A stretch of 64,000 bases of DNA, taken from the NCBI GenBank assembly GCA_977020255.1, contig CDROCS010002105.1:62001-126000 (forward strand), given 5' to 3'. Under the pieces are notes generated by a model. The model saw nothing but the letters and a program-made list of their open reading frames with translations. It was not told the origin of the DNA and did no database searches. Shown piece by piece: positions 1,464 to 63,834 of the stretch (the stretch's first letter is position 1; every line of letters begins with the position of its first letter). Made by a program: the position numbers and the translations under genes. Source of the DNA: Obrimoposthia wandeli (taxonomy: Eukaryota).

Positions 1464-2519
1464 TTACGCATCAGAAGGCAATAAGAAGATTCCTGTGGGG
1501 TTAACCGTCAAATAAGCATGGTCAGATAAATTGGCATCAAATTGTGACGAGTTCAGTTGCAGCAATAATTCTTGATCATGCCATGTTACAGAAACTTCGT
1601 ACATTGAGCCCATGTACACCACATTATTAACGATACATTGTTGGCTGGGTTCGCCCTCGTTGGTTAATAAAATAGCTTCAGGCCTTATTCCTATTTGATA
1701 ATCACCTTCAGCTTTGCCTTGAACAACTTCTGGGTCGGCTGGAATGCAGTAACCGTTGATGTTTAATTGCCCACCGTCAAAACGGCCCGTAAAAATGTTC
1801 GCATCACCCATGAAGTTTGCCATGAACATTGATGAGGGTGTTTTATATAAATCATCCGGAGAGCCTTGCTGCATGATCTCGCCGTCTTTCATTACGATAA
1901 CGGTATCAGAGACAGCGAAAGCTTCTGTTTGATCATGCGTTACGTATAAAGAGGTAATATTGAAACGCTGCTGAAGATCGCGGATTGTCTCGCGCATACT
2001 TCGGCGTAAATTTGCGTCAAGGTTACTTAATGGTTCATCAAATAGCAGTACTTTAGGCTTTAAAACCAAAGCGCGCGCCAGTGCAATACGCTGTTGTTGA
2101 CCACCAGAAATTTGGTCGACAAATCGATCACCCATACCTGATAGATCGACCAGCTTTAACGCATCATCAACACGTTGTTTAATTTCTGCGGCTGGTAATT
2201 TCAGCATTTTTAAGCCGTAGCCCACATTGTCATGTAATGATAAATGAGGAAATAAGGCATAAGACTGGAATACCATGCAAATATCGCGTTGCTGGATTGA
2301 GGTATTTGTTACGTCTTCGCCATCAATGAATATTTGCCCGCTGGTGGGTTTTTCTAACCCTGCTACTAAGCGTAAAACCGTGGTTTTACCACAACCCGAT
2401 GGACCAAGTAGTGTGACTAAGCTGCCTTGTTTAATCTCAAGATCAAGGTTGCCAATAACAGTATTGTCACCAAAGCGTTTGCAGACATTTTTTAGAACTA
2501 CAAAGTTGTCGTTTTCCAT
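1464..2519 (-). CDS. afuC: ABC transporter ATP-binding subunit, AfuC/FbpC type
   Basis: Walker A GPSGCGKT, signature ISGGQQQR, Walker B LLFDEP, C-terminal TOBE-like region. Start moved to the ATG at 2519, which follows a GGAG RBS. Confidence 0.9.
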
Positions 2520-2537
2520 AATTATTATCTCCAATCG

Positions 2538-4634
2538 TTAGTCTTGGTTGTTGGCTTTTGAACGGGATACGCGGGCTTCACCCACAAGGGCATCAAAAAT
2601 CAATATAATGGCCAGCATGACGAAAATCAGTACTGAACCATAAGCGATGGCAATGCCGTATTCGCCATCTTCAACGCGGTTTAATATATACGATGTTGCT
2701 ACACGGGTTTCTGGCGTTACCAAGAAAATAATGGCACTTACCGTGGTCATTGCGCGCACAAAGCTGTAGATCAATGTTGATAAAATAGCCGGGCGCAATA
2801 GTGGAATTAAGATATGGGTAATCGTTTTAAATGAGTTAGCACGTAAGCTCAGTGATGCTTCGTCAAGTGATTTATCTAATTGCCCTAAACCTGCAATACC
2901 TGCCCGTATTCCCACTGGAATGTTACGCATTACCATTGAAATTATGACGATTACAGCGGTTCCCGTTAAATAAACTGGCGCATCATTAAACGCTAGGATG
3001 TAAGAAACACCAGCCACCGTTCCTGGTACGGCGAAACAAAGCATGGTGGCGAATTCAATCACTTTTTTGCCATGAAATTGCTGGCGCACTACGATGTAAG
3101 CAATTAATAAGCCGAATAAAGCAGTCAGTGGGGCTGCAACGCCTGCATAGGTCATGGTGGTAAGCAATGACGGCCATGCCCCTTCGCTAAATCCCATACC
3201 AAATAGATTGATGTAGTTGTCTAGCGTTAAGCTGTAATCAACGCCCCAGTTAACGGTGAAACTGCCGAAGACAATGCTGCCGTACAGTAAGATATTGAAT
3301 GCCATCCAAAAGTACAGTAGACCAGAGACTCCGTATTTGAGCCCAGTAGGCAAGGGTTGTACATCACCACGGTAAGATTTACCGGAAATGGTTACATAAG
3401 AACGTTTACCAATCCAAATATACTGGATAACGAAAATAGCGAGAGAGAAGATTAATAGTACCGCACCCAAAGTACTGGCAGATGCATAATCAAGTTGCGC
3501 ACCAGCAATGTAAAAATATATCTGAGTGGCTAATACATCGAAGCTTCCTCCCAGTACTAACGGGTTACTGAAATCAGCTAACGATTGCACGAAAATAATG
3601 AGAAATGAGTTAGCCAGCGCAGGTTTAAGTAATGGCATAACAATTTGAAAGAATGTTTGATAACGGTTTGCACGAAGCGTGTAAGAGGCCTCTTCTAGGG
3701 ACGGAGACAGCGATTTCATTGCACCATCAAGGATCATGAAAGACATTGGTGAAAAGGCTAAAACTTGTGCCATCCAAATCCCAGTGAAACCATATAACCA
3801 GTTCGTGTGTTGTAAGCCAAACCAATCAACCATGAGCTCAGTAATATACCCTGAACGTCCTAGCATTAAAGTAACACCAAGGCCGACAACAAAGGGGGGT
3901 GTAACGATGGGTAATATTGAGAAGATACGAGCGATAAAGGCAGAACGCTTGGCGATTCTGGTTGTGTAAATAGCGAATACAAGACCAAAAATGGTCGCGA
4001 CAACACCCACTGAGGTACCCAGCATGATGGAATTTAAAATGATCTGAATAATTTGTGAGCGGCCTAAAATCTCAACAAATTGCCACATCACGAAGTTACC
4101 CATGTCATCTTGAAACATGGGCACAAAGATGGCGATACTTGGATATATAATAAAGATACTGATTAATGAAACAATACTAACCAATGAACCTATAACAAAA
4201 ATATCACCGCCGAGATATTCCAGTCGAGCTAAAGCCAGCGTTATTACACAACCTAGGGTAATGAATAAGACAATAGTGGCATAGCCTAAGCCTTGTTCGG
4301 TGTACCAAGATGACAACAACGTAAATAGCACACAGAAACCAGCATAGCCGATATCAAATTGGTGACGTTTTTTTGCGTATTTGTTTTGTGCCTGAAAAGG
4401 GCGGATTAATAGAACTAAAGGCATGGTAAACCATAACCATGAAATGTTCATTCCACTCCAACCCATCGCCTCTTTAAATTCTTGAGACGTCGATTCGAAT
4501 ACACCGTAATCGAGGGAAAAAGAGGGCAATAACACAAAGGCTCCGATCAAGGCGATGATCCAATAAAAAATGGGGTCGCGTTGCTCTGAACTTTGAAGCT
4601 GCCTTAAATCTGATTCAGCTGCTAAGTTATTCAT
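2538..4634 (-). CDS. afuB: ABC transporter permease with two fused halves, AfuB/FbpB type
   Basis: Highly hydrophobic 698 aa with two EAA-type loops (LEEASYTLRA; LDEASLSLRA). Lies between the binding-protein and ATPase genes. Confidence 0.9.
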   Translation of the reverse strand: MNNLAAESDLRQLQSSEQRDPIFYWIIALIGAFVLLPSFSLDYGVFESTSQEFKEAMGWSGMNISWLWFTMPLVLLIRPFQAQNKYAKKRHQFDIGYAGFCVLFTLLSSWYTEQGLGYATIVLFITLGCVITLALARLEYLGGDIFVIGSLVSIVSLISIFIIYPSIAIFVPMFQDDMGNFVMWQFVEILGRSQIIQIILNSIMLGTSVGVVATIFGLVFAIYTTRIAKRSAFIARIFSILPIVTPPFVVGLGVTLMLGRSGYITELMVDWFGLQHTNWLYGFTGIWMAQVLAFSPMSFMILDGAMKSLSPSLEEASYTLRANRYQTFFQIVMPLLKPALANSFLIIFVQSLADFSNPLVLGGSFDVLATQIYFYIAGAQLDYASASTLGAVLLIFSLAIFVIQYIWIGKRSYVTISGKSYRGDVQPLPTGLKYGVSGLLYFWMAFNILLYGSIVFGSFTVNWGVDYSLTLDNYINLFGMGFSEGAWPSLLTTMTYAGVAAPLTALFGLLIAYIVVRQQFHGKKVIEFATMLCFAVPGTVAGVSYILAFNDAPVYLTGTAVIVIISMVMRNIPVGIRAGIAGLGQLDKSLDEASLSLRANSFKTITHILIPLLRPAILSTLIYSFVRAMTTVSAIIFLVTPETRVATSYILNRVEDGEYGIAIAYGSVLIFVMLAIILIFDALVGEARVSRSKANNQD

Positions 4635-4772
4635 TGTTAATTACCAAAATCGAGTTGTTTAATTAATATGTTCATTAACGTTGAGGTGTAAGAAGCCCCA
4701 AGAAAAATCTCGTTATATTAAATATCGGAAAAAGTGAGCAGCACTTAGCACTGCTCAAATGTTACGAGAGGG

Positions 4773-5807
4773 TTATTCGCCCATTTTAACGATGTTTACC
4801 CACTTGTTGATCAGACGTTTACGTTCGCTAGACGAACCATAGGTTTCCATGTCGTAATCAATAAGAGACAACGCTTTTAGATCGAGCGCATTAGGTGATT
4901 GAGTCGCTTGAGTATTGGTCAAAATTTGGAACGATTTGCCCTTTTGCCATGCTAGCTGCTGGCCATCTTTAGACAGAGCCCAGTCAACAAACAACTTAGC
5001 GTTATCAATATTACGAGCACCTTTTAGTATGCTGATGCCGCCAATTTCGTAACCAGTACCTTCACAAGGAGAGATAAGTTCTAATGGTGCTCCTTTTGAT
5101 TGCTCTAATGAGTAATCGTGTAAGAAACCGATGCCGATTGCGATTTCACCTCGCGCAGCGTTACGAGATGGAGTAACGCCAGATTTGGTGTACTGAGAGA
5201 TATTTTTATCGAGATCTTTAAAGTATGTAAATGCCTTATCTTCATCCCATAATTGAATGAAGGTAGCCAGTGCTGTGTAGGCAGTACCAGAGCTTTGTGG
5301 ATCGGCGATCTGAATCTCATCTTTGTATTCTGGCTTGGTTAAATCACTCCAGCAAAGTGGGATGTCTAAACCTTTTTCTTCTAAGCGCTTAGTGTTTACG
5401 CCAAAGCCTAAAATACCCATATAAACGGCAGATGAGTAATTACCTTTACGTTTGGCCGGATCTTTAAAGTTATCCATGATGAATTCAAGTTGTGGTGATT
5501 TATAGGCCTGCAGTAAGTCCATTTCACCCGCTTGAGACTGTGGATCTAATGTGCCGCCGTACCATACATCGGCACGAGGGTTTTTCTTTTCAGCTTCAAT
5601 TTTCGCTAATGTACTGCCTGAACCATTGCGAATAAAAGATGTTTTCACGTCATATTTTTCAGAAAATGCCTTGGTTTCAGCTTCACACATAGCATTAGTA
5701 GCGCTGCAATATACAACTAATCGGCCTTCCGCCATTGCCGTTGGTACGGCAAATGCTGAGCCAATAATACAGGCAGCTAACAGACTATATTGGGTTCTAG
5801 CTTTCAT
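4773..5807 (-). CDS. afuA: ABC transporter periplasmic binding protein, AfuA type (sugar phosphate)
   Basis: Signal peptide from MKARTQ (ATG 5807 after GAGG). Motifs YCSA, GSGS, DPQSSGTAY, GFLHDY and GTGYEIG match AfuA. Adjacent to uhpABC. Confidence 0.85.
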   Translation of the reverse strand: MKARTQYSLLAACIIGSAFAVPTAMAEGRLVVYCSATNAMCEAETKAFSEKYDVKTSFIRNGSGSTLAKIEAEKKNPRADVWYGGTLDPQSQAGEMDLLQAYKSPQLEFIMDNFKDPAKRKGNYSSAVYMGILGFGVNTKRLEEKGLDIPLCWSDLTKPEYKDEIQIADPQSSGTAYTALATFIQLWDEDKAFTYFKDLDKNISQYTKSGVTPSRNAARGEIAIGIGFLHDYSLEQSKGAPLELISPCEGTGYEIGGISILKGARNIDNAKLFVDWALSKDGQQLAWQKGKSFQILTNTQATQSPNALDLKALSLIDYDMETYGSSSERKRLINKWVNIVKMGE

Positions 5808-5985
5808 TATTATGTCCTCTTTTTTTATTATAAATGCAGTGTCATAGAGCGATGGTAGGTGACACTGTGTTCTTATCGCATCCGGCGATAAGCTTTTATC
5901 ATCCAACAGCCTACGGGCTATTGGGTAACTTTATTCAGAAGCTAGATAACGCCAGTTTAGTTTGCACTCATAGCGGCTAATCATA

Positions 5986-7311
5986 TTAAGTTGCTGTAAT
6001 TGAAGGCTGCTGTGCTTTAACAAAGGGCAATATCAGCAGGCCAATAGAGGCGGCTGAAAATGTAATTATGCTGAAGAAACCATCCCAGCTAAATTGCTCG
6101 ATAACCAATGATATTGGGTAGCTTGCTAGCGCTGCCCCTAAATATCCAAACAAGCCGACAAATCCAGTCGCTGTTCCAGCCACACCTTTGTGTGAGCATT
6201 CGGCTGCAGCCATTCCAATCATCATTTGTGGGCCAAAAATAAAGAATCCAATGGAGAAAAAACAACAAGCCAAGACTGAAAAATTATTCATCGGTGTAAG
6301 CCATAATGCGGCCACTGAAATGAAAATACCCAATGCGAAAATTAAGTTCATGGGGGCACGATTACCATGAAAAAAGCGGTCAGATCCCCAGCCACCAAAC
6401 AATGAACCTAGAAACCCTCCGACTTCGAACATTGAAACGGCGGCATTGGCTGAAAATAAATCAAAACCATGACGTTCAATTAAGTAGAGATTTCCCCAAT
6501 CATTAATTGCAATGCGTACCACATAGACTAAAAAATACGAGCTACACAACAACCAGATATATTTGTTACCAATGACATAGGTTTTCAATATTTGACGAAA
6601 AGATAGCCCACGGCCTTCTTGTTCTTGTAATAACTCTAATTCATCGTTTCGCCATTGCCCTACGGTGGGTAACCCCATGGTTGTAGGCTTATCTCGCATG
6701 CGAAAACAGAGCACGATACCTACTAAAATTGCCAGAATACCGGGAATAATAAAGCCATATCGCCAACCCCAAGTCATGGCGGTAAAACCAATACCCAGCG
6801 GGACTAAAGCTCCCCCTAAATTGTGGCAAGTATTCCAAATTGACCACCAAAAACCACGCTCTGTACGGGAATACCATGTTGTGAGCAATTTGGCACAAGG
6901 GGGCCAACCCCAGCCTTGGAAAAAAGCATTCAATGTCCACAAAATGGCAAACATTGCCAGAGATGAACTTAAACCAAATGCAATATTTATGATTCCGGTG
7001 GCGATCAAGCCTAATCCCATGAAATAGCTGGGTTTAGATTGATCGCTGACCATGCCAGAAACAAACTTTGATACGCCATACGTGATATAGAATAGGGTGC
7101 CGAGAAACCCGATGTCTGAATGCTCTAAGCCAAGGTCAGCTAACATCGCTGGCATGGCAAAGTTGAGACTTTTTCGGGTGAAATAAAACATGCCGTAACC
7201 GATATACATTGAAAACATTAAATGCAATCGCCAATATTTGTACGTGGCGTCGATTTGTTGTTTATCGGTTATTATTTTTGTAGGTTGCTCTGATGTTAGG
7301 AAACCTATCAT
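5986..7311 (-). CDS. uhpC: MFS sugar-phosphate sensor/transporter UhpC
   Basis: OPA-family motifs YFTRKS, FQGWGWPPC, ERGFWWSIWNTCHNLGG, GWGSDRFF. Directly downstream of uhpAB. Confidence 0.9.
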   Translation of the reverse strand: MIGFLTSEQPTKIITDKQQIDATYKYWRLHLMFSMYIGYGMFYFTRKSLNFAMPAMLADLGLEHSDIGFLGTLFYITYGVSKFVSGMVSDQSKPSYFMGLGLIATGIINIAFGLSSSLAMFAILWTLNAFFQGWGWPPCAKLLTTWYSRTERGFWWSIWNTCHNLGGALVPLGIGFTAMTWGWRYGFIIPGILAILVGIVLCFRMRDKPTTMGLPTVGQWRNDELELLQEQEGRGLSFRQILKTYVIGNKYIWLLCSSYFLVYVVRIAINDWGNLYLIERHGFDLFSANAAVSMFEVGGFLGSLFGGWGSDRFFHGNRAPMNLIFALGIFISVAALWLTPMNNFSVLACCFFSIGFFIFGPQMMIGMAAAECSHKGVAGTATGFVGLFGYLGAALASYPISLVIEQFSWDGFFSIITFSAASIGLLILPFVKAQQPSITAT

Positions 7312-7334
7312 GGCGGCGCTATCTCCCTATTGCC

Positions 7335-7406
7335 TGAATGAATAGTACGGAAAGAATTACGATAAAGAATGAGACAGGTTTGTAAATGACTAGGAAAAAT
7401 TCCTAG
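7335..7406 (-). promoter_or_regulatory. Putative UhpA-activated promoter of uhpC
   Basis: Dyad CTAGGAA-AAA-TTCCTAG at 7390-7406 resembles the core of the E. coli uhpT UhpA site (recalled from memory). A -10-like TACTAT at 7347-7342 puts the dyad centre near -63/-64. Confidence 0.55.
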
Positions 7407-7411
7407 ATTAT

Positions 7412-9025
7412 TTAACTTGAGGTGATTTTTGTGGGCAAGTTAACAATAATTCGAGTGCCTTTATTGGTGTCGAATGTATTGTTAGCTTGATTAGTGTGGC
7501 TTTTATTTTGTCCGATGTAGAGGTCACCGCCAAGAGCACTAACCCGTTCTTCTATTCCTTTTAAACCTAGCCCCTTGCTACGCCAATTCGTTGGTAAGCC
7601 GCAGCCATTATCTCGTAATTCAAGGCTGAAAATGCCGCCGGGTACTAAGCTCAGCTGTACCTCTGTGGCGTGTGAGTGCTTGGTGACGTTATTTAATAGC
7701 TCTTGCACAATGCGATACAGCGTGACTGCTGTAATGTCATCGAGCTTGTTGGTGGCAATACCAATATTGATTTTAAAATCGATCTGACGCTCAGCAAATT
7801 TCATTTCGTGCGCAAGCTGGCGTAATGCGCTTTCTAGCCCCAGTTCATCAAGAATATGGGGGCGTAATTGGGTTAACAGCTGTTTGGTTGTGCTGTGTAT
7901 GCGCATGGCTAACGTATTGATTGTTTGTGCGGTATTTTTAGTGTTCAGTTCTTGGGTTGTTCGGTCGACAAGCATGGCTTGGATCTGAATGGCCGTAATA
8001 TTCTGACCAATTTCGTCGTGTAGTTCCCGTGCCACTGATTTTCTAATGTTTTCTTCAACTTGGACTAATTGGCAAGCGAGATATTGTTTGCTTGCAAGTT
8101 CATCAGCCAGATCTTTGTTCGCTTGTTGTAATTTTTGGGCTAGTAGGTATTGGCGGCTTATCGCTATCCCCAATCCAAGCCCGACTAAAGCTTGTGTTGT
8201 GATAAAAATTTGTAACTCTTGGTCTGTAGTAAATGAGCCTGAAATTTGACGAGCCGTCGTGAGCAAGATGCTGTTCATTACCGTGGCAAGAACGCCCCCT
8301 TGCCAGCCATAGTGATAAGCCATAAAAATATTGGGTAGCAGAATGATCAATAACCCGAGAGGTTTCATTTGATCTAATAGTGTGAGTTCAGCAACGAGCC
8401 CAATACAGAAAAAAGCAATACTCCAGAGTAACGCCGAAGGACGAAGGGTGATTTCTTTATGCACTAATGTTGGGCTTAATGGAACCCAGATTTTATGATG
8501 GAGGTAGTCATAAAGTAGATACAAGAACGGAGTCAGCAATACACCGCCAGTAATGGAGGCAATCGTACACGAAAAGGCATATTGAAGTGATAAATCTAAT
8601 GGCTTCATTAATAAGAGGATCATGATGCCCATGATTACGCCATGTACTAAGACCAATAACACCAAGGCGAGTAATTTTTGCCAATAGGTCGTTAGTTTTC
8701 GCCAATTATGGGAAAAAGGAATCGCGAGGAAATAGCTAAAGAATGGACACAATAATAATAATATGTCCTGAGGTTGGTGGTTGATGATAGACAGTAGCCA
8801 TGCAGAAAGAAGGCATTCACTGATGACAAATAATCGCCAATAGCGGCGAGCGGTTAAGACAAATACCGCGAGCCTTAATCCGCTAGGAAGAAATAACCCT
8901 GCAAGTAGTAAATCAGCGGAAAGGTAGCTACTGATACTCCACAAGCAAAACCAACTGATGCTATAGATAATAAAACTAAAGGAATACGAAAAATAACGAT
9001 TACTGAGGTGCTCTGCTTGGGTCAT
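7412..9025 (-). CDS. uhpB: Sensor histidine kinase UhpB (MASE1 + HisKA_3 + HATPase)
   Basis: Multi-TM N-terminus, H-box ARELHDEIGQ, N-box ELLNNVTKH, G1 RDNGCG, G2 GLGLKGIEERV. Confidence 0.92.
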   Translation of the reverse strand: MTQAEHLSNRYFSYSFSFIIYSISWFCLWSISSYLSADLLLAGLFLPSGLRLAVFVLTARRYWRLFVISECLLSAWLLSIINHQPQDILLLLCPFFSYFLAIPFSHNWRKLTTYWQKLLALVLLVLVHGVIMGIMILLLMKPLDLSLQYAFSCTIASITGGVLLTPFLYLLYDYLHHKIWVPLSPTLVHKEITLRPSALLWSIAFFCIGLVAELTLLDQMKPLGLLIILLPNIFMAYHYGWQGGVLATVMNSILLTTARQISGSFTTDQELQIFITTQALVGLGLGIAISRQYLLAQKLQQANKDLADELASKQYLACQLVQVEENIRKSVARELHDEIGQNITAIQIQAMLVDRTTQELNTKNTAQTINTLAMRIHSTTKQLLTQLRPHILDELGLESALRQLAHEMKFAERQIDFKINIGIATNKLDDITAVTLYRIVQELLNNVTKHSHATEVQLSLVPGGIFSLELRDNGCGLPTNWRSKGLGLKGIEERVSALGGDLYIGQNKSHTNQANNTFDTNKGTRIIVNLPTKITSS

Positions 9026-55633: not shown

Positions 55634-57850
55634 ATGCCATTCTCAATACAACAATTTAGTTCATCGATTACTGCTTTTGTTTTTGGGCAACCTTTCGCAA
55701 CGGGCGCGATTACTGCCAAGCCCCAATATGAACGAGAAATTAGACAAGAACCCAGCTCTGGCTTTCAACCTAAGACTGGAATGGCTGTGCCCTGCCAGTA
55801 TGTTGCCATCACAGAAGATGATCATGGTGTCCATATTCGTTATACGCTGGCAGAAGGTGATGCCATTTATGGGCTGGGACAAAACATGGGCAAGCTGAAC
55901 AAGCGTGGCCAGTTGTTTAAAACCTGGTGCAACGATGAATTTCGCCACTTGCCGGATAAAGCCTCGTTGTATGGTGCACATCCTTTTCTGGTGATAAAAG
56001 GCGAAAACAACTTTGCGCTGTTTGTTGATCTTCCCGGCGAGATGACGTTGGATATCGGTTTTTCTGATCCCAACCAGCTCTATATTCATATACCGGCACA
56101 TAATGTGCGGATTTTTGAATTTACGGACCCGAGTGCCAAGCAGCAGGTGCGTGATTTTCGCAGCTTAATTGGTCAGCCGTATATTCCGCCGCGCTGGGCG
56201 TTTGGTTACCAGCAGTGTCGCTGGTCATACTATGATAAAAATGCCGTTGATGAGGTGGTGAGAAATTTTCGCCATTTTGATATTCCCTGTGACACGGTTT
56301 ATCTCGATATTGATTATATGGAGGAGTTTAAAGACTTCACCATAGATCAGAATCGTTTTCCGGATTTCTCCCACTGGGTGGCTCAACTTAAGCAGCAAGG
56401 CATTCGCCTGATCCCGATCATTGATGCCGGGGTAAAAGTGGCTGAGAACTACAGTGTTTACCAGGAAGGGCACAAAAAGGGCTATTTCTGCAAAACGGAA
56501 ACCGGAGAAGAGTTTCAGGCTGCGGTGTGGCCGGGTTTGTGTGCTTTTCCTGATTTTTTCCAACCGGAAGCACGTCAGTGGTGGGGAAAGCAATATCAGT
56601 TTCTTACCGATCAGGGCATTGACGGATTCTGGAACGATATGAATGAACCGGCGCTGTTTTATTCGCCGCAAGGATTGCAGCAGGCCATTGAGCATGCCGA
56701 AAAATGCAAAGGTAAAAACATCGGCGTGCATGAATTTTTCGAACTCAAAGGTGCGTTTGATAATCTCTCTAATCGTCGTGAAGACTATCAGGCGATCTGG
56801 CACCAAATAGAAGATGGCAGCCGAATAAATCATGAGCAGGTCCATAACCTCTATGGCCAGAAAATGACTCAGGCTGCTGCCGAAGGTTTTGCGCAGCTTG
56901 ATCCTGACAAACGTTTTTTAATGTTCTCGCGGGCATCTGCTATCGGCGGGCATCGTTACGGGGGGATCTGGCTAGGTGATAACCATAGCTGGTGGGAGCA
57001 CTTAAAGCTCAATCTCGCCATGATGCCGGGCGTAAACATGTGTGGCTACCTCTATAGTGGGGCAGATGTTGGTGGCTTTGCCGGCAATGCAACAAGCGAA
57101 CTCATGTGTCGCTGGATACAATTTGCGGTCTTTACTCCTTTGCTGCGTAACCATTCCTGTTTGGGAACACGCCACCAAGAGCCTTACGCCTTTGGTGAGA
57201 GGGCGCTCACTATTATGCGGCAGCATATTAAGTTGCGATATCGGTTGATCCCTCATCTCTACTCCGAGTTTATGCAGGCTGCACAAAATAACGAGAACCT
57301 ATTCTGGCCTTTGCCGCTGGAATACGCAGATCCGGTAGCGCAAAATGTCGAAGATCAGCTGCTGGTCGGGAGCAGTTTAATGTGTGCGCCAGTACTCGAA
57401 CCGAATGCCTCCGGCCGTTATGTTTACTTGCCAGAAAGCATGTTGTTGTGGAAGGTCAAACAGCATGATGAATTTGATTTAAACGTCATGCCGCAAGGAC
57501 ACCATTATCTGCCTCTGGATTTGGCCGAAATGGCGCTCTTTCTGCGTCCGGATTCAATATTGCCTTTGGCCGATTCTGCCAATCATGTTGAAGCGCAAGA
57601 TCTCAGTTCATTAGAGTGTCTCGTATATCTGCGCAGTTGTGCTGAACACCTTTTATACCATGATGATGGAGTCACTCATAACTGGCAGCAAGGTGAGCAG
57701 GCAAGCCTGAAAATCAAGGTCTTTTATGACGCGGATAAAGAAATCCAATTGGATGTGAAAGCCAAGGGAGGGCTGCCATATAAGCAGCTCAAATTGACCA
57801 TTGTCGATCAGCTCGGACAGGAGTTTGAGCGCCATATATCAATAGCCTGA
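55634..57850 (+). CDS. GH31 alpha-glucosidase, cytoplasmic
   Basis: YGLGQ, PPRWAFGYQQCRW, YLDIDYM, GFWNDMNEP (nucleophile), WLGDN (acid/base), GADVGGF, LLRNH. Confidence 0.93.
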   Translation: MPFSIQQFSSSITAFVFGQPFATGAITAKPQYEREIRQEPSSGFQPKTGMAVPCQYVAITEDDHGVHIRYTLAEGDAIYGLGQNMGKLNKRGQLFKTWCNDEFRHLPDKASLYGAHPFLVIKGENNFALFVDLPGEMTLDIGFSDPNQLYIHIPAHNVRIFEFTDPSAKQQVRDFRSLIGQPYIPPRWAFGYQQCRWSYYDKNAVDEVVRNFRHFDIPCDTVYLDIDYMEEFKDFTIDQNRFPDFSHWVAQLKQQGIRLIPIIDAGVKVAENYSVYQEGHKKGYFCKTETGEEFQAAVWPGLCAFPDFFQPEARQWWGKQYQFLTDQGIDGFWNDMNEPALFYSPQGLQQAIEHAEKCKGKNIGVHEFFELKGAFDNLSNRREDYQAIWHQIEDGSRINHEQVHNLYGQKMTQAAAEGFAQLDPDKRFLMFSRASAIGGHRYGGIWLGDNHSWWEHLKLNLAMMPGVNMCGYLYSGADVGGFAGNATSELMCRWIQFAVFTPLLRNHSCLGTRHQEPYAFGERALTIMRQHIKLRYRLIPHLYSEFMQAAQNNENLFWPLPLEYADPVAQNVEDQLLVGSSLMCAPVLEPNASGRYVYLPESMLLWKVKQHDEFDLNVMPQGHHYLPLDLAEMALFLRPDSILPLADSANHVEAQDLSSLECLVYLRSCAEHLLYHDDGVTHNWQQGEQASLKIKVFYDADKEIQLDVKAKGGLPYKQLKLTIVDQLGQEFERHISIA

Positions 57851-58036
57851 CCCCATGACTGTCGAACCGGTGCGGGAAATGATCCTGAATGTAAGTTCGG
57901 CAGTTATAAAACAACTTGAAATTAAAATTTAAAGATAACGGCGGAAACACATTATATGAAAAAAATGCCAATTCAGCACCTGATGTTGGGAATAGCTCTG
58001 CCTAGTTTGCTGGTATTGAGTTCCATAAATCAGCTG

Positions 58037-58430
58037 CTATTTGATATCCGTAACATGGTCGACCAATAACTCATTTAAATGGTAGATCCCAACCGTGCCT
58101 TTTTGTCCTTCTGTTTTTAATGGGAGTGGGACGATATTTACCTGCGCAAAGTAGTCAGTCATGCTCATTGGATAAGGCATGATTGCGGTTGTCGAGGTTA
58201 GCATATCGATACTGGCAGTCAGTGAGTTGATCTCGTAAACGATGCGTTCCGATACCTTTTGCCTATCTCTTTCTAGCGGTTTGGGTGTAGTGGTCAAGGA
58301 AAACTGGGCTGTGGGTTTTCGATTAGGTGCAGGTAAGCTTCTGAATCTGGTGTTACCTGCAAGAGAGAATAAAGCGCCATATCCGCTTCTTCCCGGCGGT
58401 TCACGAGTAGTGGATGGCTTTTATCCATAG
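58037..58430 (-). pseudogene. Probable remnant of a LysR-type regulator (effector-domain C-terminus only)
   Basis: The 86-aa fragment (IVYEINSLTASIDML...IMPYP...IVPLPL...VGIY) resembles a LysR C-terminus. No HTH; the upstream sequence is in another frame. Confidence 0.4.
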
Positions 58431-58666: not shown

Positions 58667-58695
58667 CTGAAGCTTGCTTAAGGGAGCCTTTGTCC

Positions 58696-60333
58696 ATGAA
58701 AATAACCCCAAAATGGTGGCATGACGCTGTTGTTTATCAGGTTTATCCACGCAGTTTTTGCGATTCAAATAACGATGGCATGGGTGATCTGCAAGGCATC
58801 ATCAGCAAGCTTGATTACATCAAAAAATTAGGTGTTAATGTTGTTTGGTTGTCGCCTGTTTATCGTTCACCAATGGATGATAATGGTTATGATATTTCTG
58901 ACTATCAAGATATCGCCGCAGAGTTCGGTTCGATGGAAGATATGCAGCAATTACTTGCTGAGGCCAAACAGCGCGATATTCGCATCATTATGGATTTAGT
59001 TGTTAACCATACATCTGATGAACACCCCTGGTTTATCGAATCACGTAAATCAAAAGATAACCCATATCGTGATTACTATATTTGGCGTCAGCCTAATGAA
59101 GATGGTTCAGTGCCTGATGATCAAGGATCTGTCTTTGGCGGTGGTGCTTGGGAATTTGATAACACCACGGGTGAATATTACTACCACATTTTCTCTAAAA
59201 GACAACCAGACTTGAACTGGGAGAACCCCAAAGTTCAAGAAGAAGTGCATAAGATGATGAACTGGTGGATCGATCAGGGTATTGGTGGTTTCCGTCTTGA
59301 CGTTATCGATCTTATTGGTAAAGAAATCGATAAGAAAATTACGGGTAATGGACCTCGTCTTCACCCGTTGCTTCAGGAAATGAACAAAGCAACGTTTGGT
59401 GATAAAGATCTGCTCACCGTAGGGGAAACGTGGGACGCGACCCCTGAAACGGCCAAGTTGTACAGTAATCCTGCACGTAATGAGTTTTCAATGGTTTTCC
59501 AGTTTGAGCATATTTCTCTGACTTGGAAGCATGGTGACAAATGGAATCCGATTGCGCTTGATCTACCTAAATTCAAGCATGCGTTAACTAAGTGGCAGGT
59601 TGAGCTGGCTGATGAGGGGTGGAACTCACTGTTCTGGAACAACCATGACCTTCCTCGTGCAGTCTCAAAATTTGGCGATGACGGGCAGTATCGTGTCGAA
59701 TCCGCTAAAATGCTCGCCACAACATTGCATATGATGAAAGGTACGCCGTATGTCTATCAAGGCGAAGAGATCGGTATGACAAATGTTGCGTTTGACAGCA
59801 TTGATGACTACCGTGATATCGAAACCTTGAATTTCTACAAAGAGCGTACAGAAAATGGTGTTGCGCCTGAAACCATGTTGGCAGCGGTGCATGAAAATAG
59901 CCGTGATAATGGCCGTACACCAATGCAGTGGAACAACAATAAAAATGCGGGTTTCTCAGAGCAGCAACCGTGGTTACAGGTTAATCCTAACTATCCAGAA
60001 ATCAACGTAGATGCTGCGCTAGAAGATCAGAACTCGATCTTCTATCACTATCAAAAATTGATTCAACTGCGTAAGTCATTACCAGTGATTGTACAGGGTG
60101 CTTTTGAACCAGTATTTGAAGATCATGAACAGGTATTCGGTTACCTTCGTTCTGATGAACAACATCGTCTGTTTGTGCTTAATAACTTTACGGGCGAAGA
60201 CGTTACTGTTGCTATGCCTGAGTCACTTCAAACTGAACATGCTGAATGCATTATTTGCAATTATGAATCCCATCAGCAGATAAGCTCAACGTTAACCCTG
60301 AAGCCTTTTGAGTCTTTTGCTGTATTAATATAA
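58696..60333 (+). CDS. dexB: Oligo-1,6-glucosidase / glucan 1,6-alpha-glucosidase (GH13_31)
   Basis: VYQVYPRSF, DNGYDISDY, DLVVNHTS, QPDLNW, GFRLDVI, VGET, NNHD, YQGEEIGM, RDNGRTPMQW. AGGGAG RBS favours the ATG at 58696. Confidence 0.9.
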   Translation: MKITPKWWHDAVVYQVYPRSFCDSNNDGMGDLQGIISKLDYIKKLGVNVVWLSPVYRSPMDDNGYDISDYQDIAAEFGSMEDMQQLLAEAKQRDIRIIMDLVVNHTSDEHPWFIESRKSKDNPYRDYYIWRQPNEDGSVPDDQGSVFGGGAWEFDNTTGEYYYHIFSKRQPDLNWENPKVQEEVHKMMNWWIDQGIGGFRLDVIDLIGKEIDKKITGNGPRLHPLLQEMNKATFGDKDLLTVGETWDATPETAKLYSNPARNEFSMVFQFEHISLTWKHGDKWNPIALDLPKFKHALTKWQVELADEGWNSLFWNNHDLPRAVSKFGDDGQYRVESAKMLATTLHMMKGTPYVYQGEEIGMTNVAFDSIDDYRDIETLNFYKERTENGVAPETMLAAVHENSRDNGRTPMQWNNNKNAGFSEQQPWLQVNPNYPEINVDAALEDQNSIFYHYQKLIQLRKSLPVIVQGAFEPVFEDHEQVFGYLRSDEQHRLFVLNNFTGEDVTVAMPESLQTEHAECIICNYESHQQISSTLTLKPFESFAVLI

Positions 60334-60437
60334 TTGTGCCTTGTTTGATTATGGGTAACGATTAACTTTTTTCATTGTCTTGGTTCTGTTCAATTGCTTT
60401 TGAACAGAGCCTTTTTTATTTGGGATAAATCAATATT

Positions 60438-61523
60438 ATGAATTACAGGTATGAAGGGAGTGATGTGGTTTTTGATATTCCACAGAAAGGAAAGCACATC
60501 TACCTGATTGGTACTTTTACTAATTGGCAAAAAAAAGATGAATACAAATTCATTGAAATGGGAAATAACCTATTATTACGAACAAGCCGTCAGGCAGTGA
60601 ATAAAATTGGTAATTCTGGATATACCGAATATTATTTCTGGGATGACGAAAAACAACAACCTTTGCCTTATGATGATAATCACCCTGCTGGATACGGTTT
60701 TAATAATCAATTCAATGGTAGCTATAATTATTTATTATTGCCTGAAAATATCAGTATTGATGATTTAGATGTAATTATTCGTGATTGTGAGCAGTCGTTT
60801 CAAATTAAAACGATGTCATGTGAGTTTGAATCTGACCGGGTGTTAGCTAACTTTAGAGAAGTAAACGGCGGGAAATTGGCGAAACAAACACTGTTTCGCT
60901 CTTACCATCCAGTTATTCCTTCAAGGGCTGGTCATCCCCAACTAAGAGAGATCGAAACCCAACGTCAACAAACAGCTATGCGTTTACTTGAAATGAACAA
61001 TATACGCACTGTTCTCAATCTTTCAGAAACGGCGCAAGAGCTTGGTGAATATCTTCAAACAGCCGAATCAAGCTATTACAAAACACTGTGGTTCAGTGGG
61101 GGGGTAATAAATGTCCCCGTTGCTTATGAAACAGTGTATTTCATGTCTGATAGGGATGAGAGTTTTAATCCCGATGAATTGGGTTTTCAGACGGGTATCC
61201 AAGCTGTGATTCAGATGATTGCTAATCATCAGCCTCCCTATCATGTTCACTGTCGATTGGGTTCTGACCGAACAGGCGTCGTGATTGCTTTTTTACAGTT
61301 ATTCATGGGTGCAGACAAGGCACTGATAGCAGATAATTATTTGAAAACTAATCAGATGGCAATCGGGGAATATCGCAGTATTCGTTTGCTGGAACATGCA
61401 CTAGAGCAAGCATTAGGAAAGGGATGTTTTGATAATGGCCACTCGATAACGCGCAATTATTTATTGTCGTTAGGGTTAGCGAGTAATGTCATTGAGTTGG
61501 CATATAAAAACTTGGCATCATAA
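60438..61523 (+). CDS. CX5R cysteine phosphatase (MptpB/Y_phosphatase3-like) with an N-terminal CBM48/E-set-like module
   Basis: N-terminal IYLIGTFTNW; then NFREV, LFRS, IRTVLNL, P-loop HCRLGSDRTG, and I..NYLKTN. No signal peptide. Confidence 0.8.
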   Translation: MNYRYEGSDVVFDIPQKGKHIYLIGTFTNWQKKDEYKFIEMGNNLLLRTSRQAVNKIGNSGYTEYYFWDDEKQQPLPYDDNHPAGYGFNNQFNGSYNYLLLPENISIDDLDVIIRDCEQSFQIKTMSCEFESDRVLANFREVNGGKLAKQTLFRSYHPVIPSRAGHPQLREIETQRQQTAMRLLEMNNIRTVLNLSETAQELGEYLQTAESSYYKTLWFSGGVINVPVAYETVYFMSDRDESFNPDELGFQTGIQAVIQMIANHQPPYHVHCRLGSDRTGVVIAFLQLFMGADKALIADNYLKTNQMAIGEYRSIRLLEHALEQALGKGCFDNGHSITRNYLLSLGLASNVIELAYKNLAS

Positions 61524-61559: not shown

Positions 61560-61597
61560 AAGCCCGTTACTGCTAGTTATTGCAGTAACGGGCTTTT
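61560..61597. terminator. Bidirectional terminator between the phosphatase gene and glgX
   Basis: AAGCCCGTTACTGC-N8-GCAGTAACGGGCTT, a perfect 14-bp stem. Confidence 0.8.
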
Positions 61598-61620: not shown

Positions 61621-63570
61621 CTATTCCCGATAAAGAATTGTGATAGATTGGGTGCTTTGCATGTAGGTGGTTTGCGTTTGGCGATTATTAAGAACGGGCT
61701 CTGAGGTATCGCAAACAATACGCCATTTACCGCCAACGGGTAAACGGTATCGAGTTGGAATTGTTGAGCTATTGATTAAAAATAACAGCTCTTTACCATT
61801 CTTATATAGGCCAAGGTAGAGAGCAAAAGCTTCAAGATTTTGCCAATCATCGCTGTTCATTAGTTTGCCATTTGAATGGTTCCAACGAATGCGGTGGTGT
61901 CCACGTTCACTACCACTGAATGCTCTAATAAACGGACTCATCACTTCTTTTCTGGCTTTTACCATCCCTGCAAACCAGTTTTTGAAATTAATATTATCAG
62001 GTGATAATACCCAGTTAGCCCAGCTGATCTCATTATTTTGACAGTAAGCATTGTTATTGCCATTTTGACTATGAGATAGATGATCTACGGCGAGAAGGTG
62101 AGGAATGCCAAAGCTAAATAGTAACGTTGTCATGAGGTTGCGCTTTTGACGTTCGCGCTTATACAGAACCGACAGGTTATCTGTTTCCCCTTCAATCCCG
62201 TGGTTACATGAACGATTGTCACCATGTCCATCAAGGTTTCTTTCACCATTTGCATCATTGTGCTTGTGGTTGTAAGACACGAGATCTTGCAGCGTAAAAC
62301 CATCATGATAGGAAATGAAATTGACTGGAAGTTTGTCTGGCCAACCTCCCGCACTGAAGAAATCGCGAGATCCCATCAGTCGAGTGGCAAATTCTTTGAC
62401 ATTATTTTTATCGCCTAGCCAATGACTCTTGACGGTATCGCGGAATTTATCATTGCACTCGTTCCAACCTCGCGGAAAATTACCGAGTTGATAGCCGTCA
62501 GGACCTACATCCCATGGTTCTGCAATCAATTTGACCTTTTGTAAAATTGGATCTTGTTCAATGGCTTTAAAGAAGGCGCTTTGGGAGTCAAAACGATGCC
62601 CGTTACGTCCTAGTGTTGCTGCCAAATCAAAGCGGAAACCATCAATTTGGTAGTGGATTACCCAGTGCCGCAGAGTATCGATTACAAGGGTTAGGCTCGC
62701 TTGATAAGTAAGATCAACCGTATTACCACAGCCCGTATAGTTGTGATGATTTTCATTTTCATCAAGAAGATAGTAATTCTTATCCAAACACTTCAAATGG
62801 AATTTGGGTCCACCTTCACCACCTTCGGCAGTGTGGTTAAACACGATATCCATGATGACTTCAATACCTTCTTTATGCAACTCCCTTACCATGGTCTTCA
62901 TTTCTGTGACGGCATCATTTATCGCATACCGCGGTTCTGGTGCCATAAAGCATAGGCTGTTATAGCCCCAGAAATTCACTTTATCCATCTTAAGCAAGTG
63001 GGGTTCAGACATGCATGAAGTGACAGGGAGTAATTGAAGGCTGGTTATACCTTGTTCTTTAAAAAACTTGATTGAAGCTGGCTGGCAGAGACCAAGGTAA
63101 GTGCCTCGGTATGGCTCTTCAATATGCTTTTGAAGCTGAGTAAAGCCTTTAACGTGCGTTTCACACAGGATGGTTTCTTCGTACGGTATCTGTGGAAAAG
63201 CGGTGTGTTGCCAATCAAATTGATGGTCAATAACAACAGATCTAGCGAATTTCCAGCTTTCTTTTGCCGTGAAAGGCTCTATATAGAAAGGCGTTTTATT
63301 GAGGGCCTGCGCATATGGGTCGAGAATTAATCTTTCATCTTGTTTGTCTTTAATTTGAAAGCCATAGACCTGTCCAGCGTTAATATTAGGAACGAAGGTA
63401 TAGTGGATATCTAAATGTTTATGATCAAAATCAATGATTGTCTTTTTATTTTCAACGTCGAAAAGAACTAATTTAATTTCTTGGTTATCAGAACAGTGAA
63501 TTGAAAAATTACAACCTTGATCACATATTGTAGCCCCTAAAGGATAAGCTTGAGCTAATTTAGCAGACAT
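61621..63570 (-). CDS. glgX: Glycogen debranching enzyme (GH13_11, isoamylase type)
   Basis: YPLGAT, LDPYA, ETHVKGFT, NFWGYN, DIVFNHTAE, DGFRFDLA, IAEPWD, HDGFTLQDLVSY. Start is the ATG at 63570 (alternative 63597). Confidence 0.94.
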   Translation of the reverse strand: MSAKLAQAYPLGATICDQGCNFSIHCSDNQEIKLVLFDVENKKTIIDFDHKHLDIHYTFVPNINAGQVYGFQIKDKQDERLILDPYAQALNKTPFYIEPFTAKESWKFARSVVIDHQFDWQHTAFPQIPYEETILCETHVKGFTQLQKHIEEPYRGTYLGLCQPASIKFFKEQGITSLQLLPVTSCMSEPHLLKMDKVNFWGYNSLCFMAPEPRYAINDAVTEMKTMVRELHKEGIEVIMDIVFNHTAEGGEGGPKFHLKCLDKNYYLLDENENHHNYTGCGNTVDLTYQASLTLVIDTLRHWVIHYQIDGFRFDLAATLGRNGHRFDSQSAFFKAIEQDPILQKVKLIAEPWDVGPDGYQLGNFPRGWNECNDKFRDTVKSHWLGDKNNVKEFATRLMGSRDFFSAGGWPDKLPVNFISYHDGFTLQDLVSYNHKHNDANGERNLDGHGDNRSCNHGIEGETDNLSVLYKRERQKRNLMTTLLFSFGIPHLLAVDHLSHSQNGNNNAYCQNNEISWANWVLSPDNINFKNWFAGMVKARKEVMSPFIRAFSGSERGHHRIRWNHSNGKLMNSDDWQNLEAFALYLGLYKNGKELLFLINSSTIPTRYRLPVGGKWRIVCDTSEPVLNNRQTQTTYMQSTQSITILYRE

Positions 63571-63834
63571 TGAATCGATCTCTTTACTTATTTGCATATT
63601 TATACGTGCTATTAAATAGTGAAATCCCCCTCAGTCAAGAAATGTTTTTGAAAAAAATTAATTAATTAATTGTGTCGTTTTTATTTTATATTTTTTCTTT
63701 AAACATTGAGTTGATCTCTTTACTTATTTTTATTTTAATAAACGCTATTAAATAGTGATGATTTCCTCAGTCAAGGCATGTTTTTTTGATAAAAAATAAA
63801 AACTAATTAAGTAACTAAATATTCCGTTTTTATT
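63567..63834. repeat. Imperfect tandem duplication of the glgX 5' region (63567-63685 and 63703-63834)
   Basis: Shared blocks ACATTGA..GATCTCTTTACTTATTT, GCTATTAAATAGTGA, CCTCAGTCAAG..ATGTTTTT and CGTTTTTATT. Confidence 0.85.

Follow-up and report, generated by a model that had tools for sequence, protein, structure and literature searches.

What is a cysteine phosphatase with a putative sugar-binding domain doing among enzymes of alpha-glucan degradation? The question is raised by a gene at 60438..61523 (+ strand, from the ATG start to the stop codon, included) of a stretch of 64,000 nucleotides (nt) from the assembly of Obrimoposthia wandeli (GCA_977020255.1, contig CDROCS010002105.1, positions 62,001 to 126,000), hereafter called the window. 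This Photobacterium gene codes for a protein of 361 amino acids (aa), which a first-pass annotation had taken for a carbohydrate-binding-like module fused to a CX5R phosphatase and for a candidate bacterial glucan phosphatase. The observation is confirmed and the interpretation is supported, every computationally testable part having come out as predicted. The protein is best read as a cytoplasmic cysteine phosphatase of glucans or phospho-dextrins, with a role like that of laforin and SEX4 but from another phosphatase branch, a reading to which we assign a probability of about 0.55.

The two motifs that had first drawn attention are both found on direct reading of the sequence, IYLIGTFTNW as residues 21-30 of the protein (the codon of W30 being nt 60525-60527) and an intact HCRLGSDRTG as residues 271-280. 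The full-length AlphaFold2 model, built on a 35-sequence family alignment, has a mean predicted local distance difference test score (pLDDT) of 95 and two domains, which, given a predicted template modelling score (pTM) of 0.92, are expected to keep a fixed mutual arrangement. Residues 1-104 (60438..60749, +) form a beta-sandwich in the model (pLDDT 91-95), a linker (60750..60830, +) follows, with a helix at residues 107-120 in the secondary structure of the model, and residues 132-361 (60831..61520, +) make up the catalytic domain. Residues 1-104 were also modelled alone (pLDDT 91) for comparison with the PDB using Foldseek. The top 36 matches are all carbohydrate-binding modules (CBM) of AMPK beta subunits, with TM scores (by target) of 0.70-0.76, and the best superposition has TM 0.76, a root-mean-square deviation of 2.5 Å, and 25% identity. 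A VIA search, independent of Foldseek, gives as top matches the CBM48 modules of a Pyrococcus amylase (Z 9.0), AMPK-beta2 (8.6), and branching enzymes (GlgB; 8.5), next those of a SusG-like amylase of B. ovatus (7.9), an isoamylase (7.5), and the SNF1 subunit Sip2 (7.4), and also includes the CBM48 of SEX4 (7.0) and the CBM20 of laforin (5.8). These Z values are modestly over background, and their weight comes from the uniformity of the list of matches. The CBM fold expected for the N-terminus is thus borne out at the level of models: residues 1-104 are predicted to adopt the CBM48 fold and to resemble most closely the glycogen-binding domain of AMPK-beta.

Sequence comparisons point in the same direction. 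The Pfam family PF16561 (AMPK1_CBM) aligns with residues 10-34 (E 0.003), and language-model features indicate CBM48/AMPK1_CBM as well. The N-domain profile has weak matches to PDB sequences (E 0.008-0.8), to the right kind of modules, and hhalign finds a weak match with a stand-alone CBM48 protein (locus L073; 30% probability, 47 columns). Only one of 91 family representatives, P0114, clears the PF16561 cut-off (29.3 vs 26.8 bits); phmmer aligns it to AMPK-beta1 (1z0n, E 0.004), and in this alignment the family-invariant Trp, W30 here, is W100 of AMPK-beta1, a Trp on which the sugar stacks. The module has in common with AMPK-beta and with the CBM48 (PF16561) of SNF1 Sip2 the motif G-[ST]-F-x-N-W, which contains this residue. 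The position after E-[FY], equivalent to K126 of AMPK-beta1, is Lys in a plurality of members (53/149), and N97 possibly corresponds to AMPK N150, by an inferred mapping only. Unlike AMPK-beta, the family has an invariant GNSG-x-x-E loop of its own, and its module is fused to a phosphatase instead of serving as a kinase scaffold.

The catalytic domain has the fold of the protein tyrosine phosphatases (PTP), and Pfam PF13350 (Y_phosphatase3) matches residues 251-319 with E 1.1e-13 (52.1 bits, cut-off 22.2). Its P-loop HCRLGSDRTG (61248..61277, +) holds the nucleophile C272 and R278. In the VIA search the best match of residues 132-361 is MptpB, the PtpB of Mycobacterium tuberculosis (1ywf; Z 16.3, 23% identity, 188 residues aligned), and the next ones are a C. 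difficile PTP (Z 14.8) and two inositol-pyrophosphatases, Siw14 (13.0) and AtPFA-DSP1 (12.6). The family of dual-specificity phosphatases (DSP), PF00782 DSPc, gives 14.3 bits, well under its cut-off of 33.5, and the NCBIfam XopH model matches weakly (E 0.02, 14 bits vs a cut-off of 500). The first-pass annotation had assigned the DRTG loop to the branch of MptpB rather than to that of laforin, and the structural comparison agrees: the domain is placed by its model in the MptpB/PF13350 branch and not in the DSP branch of laforin and SEX4 (Z 16.3 with MptpB vs 11.1 with SEX4). Ser276 occupies the position of a Lys in MptpB and in the CBM-less relatives, which we take to be K164 of MptpB, the residue linked to phosphoinositide activity. 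The missing P-loop Lys, the additional aromatics, and the CBM48 fusion make the protein an atypical member of PF13350.

The same two-domain module is widespread. A word-indexed search returned 75 homologues conserved over their full length, a profile search run exhaustively over 1.8 billion representatives returned 135 clusters at E < 1e-30, and about 100 of the best 150 clusters listed match across the whole module; grouped at 50% identity, the family numbers at least 100 clusters. In public databases the proteins are annotated simply as "tyrosine-protein phosphatase". PF13350 is matched by all 91 representatives and PF16561 (at E <= 0.01) by 14 of them; the other carbohydrate-module matches in the 91 are of starch-binding families only (CBM53, CBM48, SusF_N). 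Among 149 full-module members, the N-domain conserves W30 (148/149), E64 (148/149), and N97 (130/149), and the GNSG of residues 58-61, which forms the GNSG-x-x-E loop with E64, is invariant. Of 148 members, 147 retain the catalytic C272, 145 retain D277, and 144 retain R278.

The comparison of 148 CBM-fused members with their 26 nearest relatives lacking the N-domain reveals a signature. The P-loop reads HC-R-L-G-[S/T]-DRTG in the former and HC-[T/N]-E-G-K-DRTG in the latter, the residue before DRTG being Ser or Thr in 124/148 family members and Lys in 20/26 of the CBM-less relatives. Similarly, R-S-Y-H-P in the fused family stands against R-S-S-S-P in the relatives, and an extra loop Y230-E-T-V-Y234 and R313 are found in the fused family only. 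From these alignments we infer that the loss of the P-loop Lys and the gain of several invariant Tyr residues would fit a switch from an anionic lipid or inositol substrate to a carbohydrate. MptpB, Listeria LipA, and the C. difficile PTP share with the family the HCxxGxDRTG-type P-loop and the N...R and RS..P motifs, but they have no CBM, keep the Lys before DRTG, and lack both the Y156/H157 pair and the Y230-Y234 loop. These three are regarded not as metabolic enzymes but as secreted phosphatases of proteins or lipids that are associated with virulence.

The gene is surrounded in the window by genes of alpha-glucan metabolism. Upstream lie a GH31 alpha-glucosidase (55634..57850, +; identified by profile matches) and a GH13 enzyme of the dexB type, i.e., an oligo-/glucan-1,6-alpha-glucosidase (58690..60333, +), whose stop codon at 60333 is separated from the phosphatase gene, on the same strand, by a gap of 104 nt. 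Downstream and convergent, 97 nt away, is glgX (61621..63597, −), coding for a glycogen/limit-dextrin debranching enzyme with a CBM48 of its own, which clears the TIGR02100 cut-off (680 vs 641). The 104-nt spacing and the orientations are as the first-pass annotation gave them. The label dexB is fair, because among solved structures the GH13 enzyme is nearer to 4aie (glucan-1,6-alpha-glucosidase) and 1uok (oligo-1,6-glucosidase), with 676 bits, than to 5brq (trehalose-6-P hydrolase), with 588. It also matches a phosphotrehalase subfamily model (NF008183; 628 bits, cut-off 535). An identity as phosphotrehalase (TreC), which would have pointed to sugar-phosphate metabolism, was rejected, as the protein stays under the TIGR02403 cut-off and is nearer to the solved 1,6-glucosidases than to TreA. 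In the closest relatives (Photobacterium frigidiphilum, P. profundum, and P. indicum; 85-87% identity), LamB maltoporin, MalM, and a further GH13 are encoded beyond glgX. The succession of GH31, dexB, and glgX, continued by lamB-malM-GH13 in relatives, therefore marks a region of maltodextrin/alpha-glucan utilisation; the alpha-glucan character that had been attributed to the cluster stands, and "glycogen catabolism" is the less apt name for it. The N-terminus of the phosphatase (MNYRYEGSDVVFDIPQKGKH) contains no hydrophobic stretch, and hence the protein has no signal peptide, as previously noted. Relative to close relatives, the ratio of nonsynonymous to synonymous substitution rates (dN/dS) of its gene is 0.14-0.16, so that the gene is under purifying selection; it is the quickest to evolve of the three, the ratios of glgX and dexB being 0.10 and 0.05-0.07.

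How general is this association? In Vibrionaceae, the phosphatase gene adjoins glgX in 20 of 21 loci, down to 48% identity, and dexB is directly upstream in 16 of these 20. In four Photobacterium species (L007, L009, L010, and L021; positions ~1890-7545), an insertion of five genes, among them efflux components (a membrane-fusion protein of the HlyD type and an outer-membrane factor of the OEP type), lies between dexB and the phosphatase gene, which still adjoins glgX. A metagenome-assembled genome (MAG) of Fusobacteriaceae holds a homologue with 40% identity, sister to the Vibrionaceae clade, preceded by two MalF/MalG-type permeases and by a GH13 of the neopullulanase/maltogenic-amylase type from which a gap of 3 nt separates it. 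One Spirochaetales MAG has the gene order phosphatase-LacI-GH13, and in two further spirochaete loci a GH13 lies within 5-6 kb of the phosphatase gene. In Bacteroidota, the genes of the Prevotella/Bacteroidaceae form P0218 (190 contigs) and of the Muribaculaceae form P0111 are directly downstream of a regulator of the SusR family (PF28559 + PF19904), and these SusR-phosphatase pairs stand in otherwise differing surroundings. Another lipoprotein form has a TrmB-family sugar regulator upstream, and a secreted Clostridia-like form is convergent with the gene of a 105-aa stand-alone CBM48 protein. The neighbours of P0127 code for a TonB receptor, DUF5074 and DUF4465 proteins, and a dockerin protein, of which the relation to starch is not obvious; the contigs of P0081, P0132, P0122, and P0109 are too short for a reading of the gene context. 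The glucan-linked members are spread over no fewer than four distinct clades of the family tree.

Many family members are exported. Signal peptides or lipoprotein signal peptides are present in about one-third of them, and hence a polysaccharide fits better than a protein as substrate. Some exported members carry dockerins, tails of the type IX secretion system (T9SS), or starch-binding CBMs. The homologues P0218 and P0111 are lipoproteins of 650 aa; the Prevotella form has a C-terminal extension similar to the CBM26 starch-binding proteins of Bacteroidota (score 0.93, 191 shared features), which is a lead only, and in Muribaculaceae one member carries both a SusF-type CBM and a dockerin as fusion partners. 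In 4 of the 91 representatives (P0161, P0168, and two more), a CotH protein-kinase-like domain follows the CBM48-phosphatase module at the C-terminus, and one CotH-fused member (L080) adjoins genes for a glycosyltransferase and a sugar aminotransferase. Judging by domain composition, such fusions could be a kinase/phosphatase pair working on a glycan, and they could represent a prokaryotic glucan kinase/phosphatase pair.

Under the reading as a glucan phosphatase, the N-domain would dock on alpha-1,4/1,6-glucan chains through a platform at Trp30, the GNSG-x-x-E loop, and Asn97, and the catalytic domain would hydrolyse phosphate monoesters on glucose residues, with a phospho-Cys272 intermediate that Arg278 stabilises. 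The substrates would be imported (phospho)maltodextrins derived from starch or glycogen, or else the glycogen of the cell itself. Because phosphate esters block exo-acting and debranching enzymes, their removal would free GlgX, the DexB-like 1,6-glucosidase, and the GH31 glucosidase to go to completion. The lipoprotein form of gut Bacteroidales, placed behind the maltose-sensing SusR, may carry out the same reaction on (dietary) starch at the cell surface. The enzyme would thereby be an analogue of laforin, SEX4, and LSF2, built independently from the MptpB/atypical-phosphatase branch. That the nearest solved relatives (MptpB, Siw14, and PFA-DSP) already act on non-protein polyol phosphates speaks in favour of such a role. 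The wider proposition, that bacteria hold a widespread glucan-phosphatase family of their own, convergent with laforin and SEX4, made of CBM48 plus an MptpB-type domain, and used both in the cytoplasm (Photobacterium, Fusobacteriaceae, and spirochaetes) and at the surface (the SusR-linked lipoproteins of Prevotella and Muribaculaceae and a form with a dockerin), has in our view about even odds.

Several observations weigh against these proposals. The glucan-phosphatase active-site signature of laforin and SEX4 is C-z-A-G-psi-G-R, from which the loop C-R-L-G-S-D-R departs, and SEX4 ranks only 42nd in the VIA search with the catalytic domain (Z 11.1), after MptpB, Siw14, PFA-DSP, and PRL. The 361-aa protein itself clears neither the cut-off of PF16561 (18.2 vs 26.8 bits) nor that of PF02922; its residue at the K126 position is Tyr66, and the position of AMPK-beta1 W133 is variable in the 149 members, with no conserved counterpart. 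The VIA search also finds CBM48 folds in xylan and feruloyl esterases. As for the gene context, the survey of Vibrionaceae loci includes a copy in Vibrio aestuarianus that has no glucan neighbours, most Treponema homologues (cytoplasmic, 25-32% identity) stand among genes for a ParA/Mrp-type NTPase, a thioesterase, a GH3, and a phosphotransacetylase, and, of the 105 neighbour clusters that lie outside Vibrionaceae, just 2 have an alpha-amylase domain. The Treponema and V. aestuarianus loci make the alpha-glucan link recurrent, not universal: several lineages independently show the linkage that the first-pass annotation expected, to genes of alpha-glucan use or to regulators, and most Treponema do not. 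Co-transcription is not to be assumed either, since a conserved terminator-like hairpin parts dexB from the phosphatase gene. Metatranscriptome contigs of relatives from marine sediments span dexB and glgX and not the phosphatase gene, which diverges faster, and such contigs cannot prove absence. Lastly, bacterial glycogen is reported to be very poor in phosphate (0.9 nmol/mg in E. coli; PMC13666283).

One may ask whether the CBM48 does no more than bring the enzyme to particles of glycogen or starch, as in AMPK-beta or the glycogen-targeting subunits of PP1. The enzyme would then be a tethered protein phosphatase, with bound phosphoproteins such as phosphorylase, synthase, and transport or regulatory proteins as substrates. 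The best match of the module is indeed a tether, that of AMPK-beta, relatives of the PF13350/MptpB type are annotated, and partly proven, as protein Tyr/Ser/Thr phosphatases, and the four CotH-fused representatives suggest a pairing of kinase and phosphatase. However, phosphoprotein substrates are unlikely for the one-third or so of members that are exported, some with a dockerin, a T9SS tail, or a starch CBM, and no kinase gene is conserved beside the phosphatase gene in the Photobacterium loci. We also know of no established mechanism by which Tyr phosphorylation would control bacterial glycogen enzymes. We regard this explanation as improbable.

An equally non-glucan use of the active site would be the hydrolysis of some other phospho-ester, for example an inositol phosphate, in the manner of a phytase, or a phosphoinositide, or a phosphorylated glycan of the envelope. 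The N-domain would then be an E-set beta-sandwich of a generic kind, with a role that is structural or lies in binding something else. Phosphoinositides or inositol pyrophosphates are the substrates of the structural neighbours MptpB, Siw14, and PFA-DSP1, and PMC6409689 describes a PTP of the PF13350 type with phytase activity. The weak likeness to XopH, the scarcity of glucan genes in most Treponema loci, the glycosyltransferase genes beside a CotH-fused member, and the CBM48-fold modules of feruloyl esterases all agree with it. It is at odds with the P-loop, where the Lys linked to phosphoinositides in MptpB is mostly Ser or Thr in the CBM-fused family, with the carbohydrate-module matches of the family, which are all of starch-binding types, and with the links to SusR, TrmB, malFG-GH13, dexB, glgX, and lamB, which recur in separate clades; we hold it to be unlikely. 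The substrate could finally be a small cytoplasmic alpha-glucoside phosphate (maltose-6'-P, glucose-6-P or glucose-1-P, trehalose-6-P, maltose-1-P), with the CBM-like domain acting as a subsite for a short oligosaccharide instead of a polymer binder. The Photobacterium protein is cytoplasmic, and the upstream GH13 matches the phosphotrehalase model (628 vs 535 bits), but this GH13 is nearer to 1,6-glucosidases than to the solved trehalose-6-P hydrolase, no gene of the phosphotransferase system lies within the cluster, and exported members are out of reach of cytoplasmic sugar phosphates. Such dephosphorylations are usually performed by HAD and other phosphatases. This last explanation seems to us quite improbable.

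The preferred reading, a glucan phosphatase, can be set against the known systems. Like SEX4 and laforin, the protein joins a CX5R cysteine phosphatase to a starch- or glycogen-binding module (CBM48 in SEX4, CBM20 in laforin); Foldseek matches of the whole 361-aa model include laforin (4rkk), and the CBM-then-phosphatase order is that of laforin and the reverse of that of SEX4. The predicted role among alpha-glucan-degrading enzymes, based here on the position of the gene, is also that of SEX4, LSF2, and laforin. Unlike in SEX4 and laforin, the catalytic domain is of the MptpB/PF13350 type and not a DSP, and unlike in all three, the family is prokaryotic and many of its members are exported. 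To our knowledge, glucan phosphatases have to date come from eukaryotes only. The first-pass annotation knew of no described bacterial example, and our full-text literature search found no paper on a "bacterial" or "prokaryotic glucan phosphatase" and none joining SusR, starch, and tyrosine phosphatase. A 2026 review states that prokaryotes lack laforin and treats as open whether and how phosphate of prokaryotic glycogen is handled (PMC13666283), and, according to the abstract of a 2025 paper in the Journal of Biological Chemistry, no glycogen phosphatase other than laforin is known (PMC12834914). The family would probably be the first prokaryotic counterpart, i.e., a known kind of function in a new lineage, fold branch, and distribution.

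If true, enzyme evolution would have converged here, in a clean example, from another phosphatase branch, and one would understand how bacteria that degrade starch in the gut and in the sea handle the phosphate esters that block amylases and debranching enzymes. Phosphate bound to starch or glycogen would then be a real barrier for microbes digesting alpha-glucans, which bears on the digestion of potato-type or resistant starch by Prevotella and Muribaculaceae. It would also provide a genetic handle on whether bacterial glycogen carries phosphate, as well as compact enzymes for processing starch or clearing hyper-phosphorylated polyglucosan.

Some features of the gene context stand apart from alpha-glucans. 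A gene for a PF10609 NTPase (ParA/Mrp/NUBPL type) is directly downstream of the phosphatase gene in 18 Treponema loci (L029, L039-L062), and one of the same type is divergent from a T9SS-tailed family member of Bacteroidota (P0109 contig). In Prevotella (L069-L072), the SusR-phosphatase pair lies within a sufB-sufC-sufD ... sufS-like run. The family thus recurs beside genes of Fe-S cluster assembly in Treponema, Bacteroidota, and Prevotella loci. In one spirochaete lineage (L026-L028, L030, L066, and L067), two adenylate/guanylate-cyclase genes come before a lipoprotein-type member, and the gene of a DUF763 protein (387 aa) comes 2 nt behind it, an operon-like arrangement.

The intergenic regions of the window hold two hairpins. 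The one between dexB and the phosphatase gene (60382..60421, +; z -3.1) is strong and terminator-like, with a T-run, and ends 17 nt before the ATG. It is kept across Photobacterium (L001-L020) with compensatory changes in the stem (GGTTCTGTTCAA/TTGAACAGAGCC, GGCTCTATTTCA/TGAAATAGAGCC, and others). Either the phosphatase is expressed by (attenuated) read-through from dexB or the hairpin is regulatory. The other, a 14-bp hairpin that resembles a bidirectional terminator, lies in the gap between the phosphatase gene and glgX (61560..61595). Relative to L001-L003, in the segment 58690-63597 of the window, the synonymous divergence (dS) of the phosphatase gene is 0.47-0.55, about three times that of dexB (0.16-0.20), glgX being in between (0.34-0.38). 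This contrast suggests that codon choice is strongly constrained in dexB, or else that a recombination boundary lies at the hairpin separating dexB from the phosphatase gene.

Two neighbouring genes also differ from their counterparts in relatives. At 58010-58422 (−) there is a remnant of a LysR-family regulator, of which residues ~172-301 alone are left and whose frame is broken near 58300; the whole LysR gene (303 aa) is found upstream of dexB in P. frigidiphilum, P. profundum, and P. indicum. A segment with the GH31 alpha-glucosidase, 95% identical to locus L004 of P. sagamiensis, appears to have taken the place of the 5' half of the gene. For glgX, the stretch that in relatives corresponds to the nine initial codons of the 658-aa open reading frame (63571-63597, −) contains an in-frame stop codon, and the true start is probably the second Met (MSAKLAQ...), which would give a protein of 649 aa like those of the relatives.

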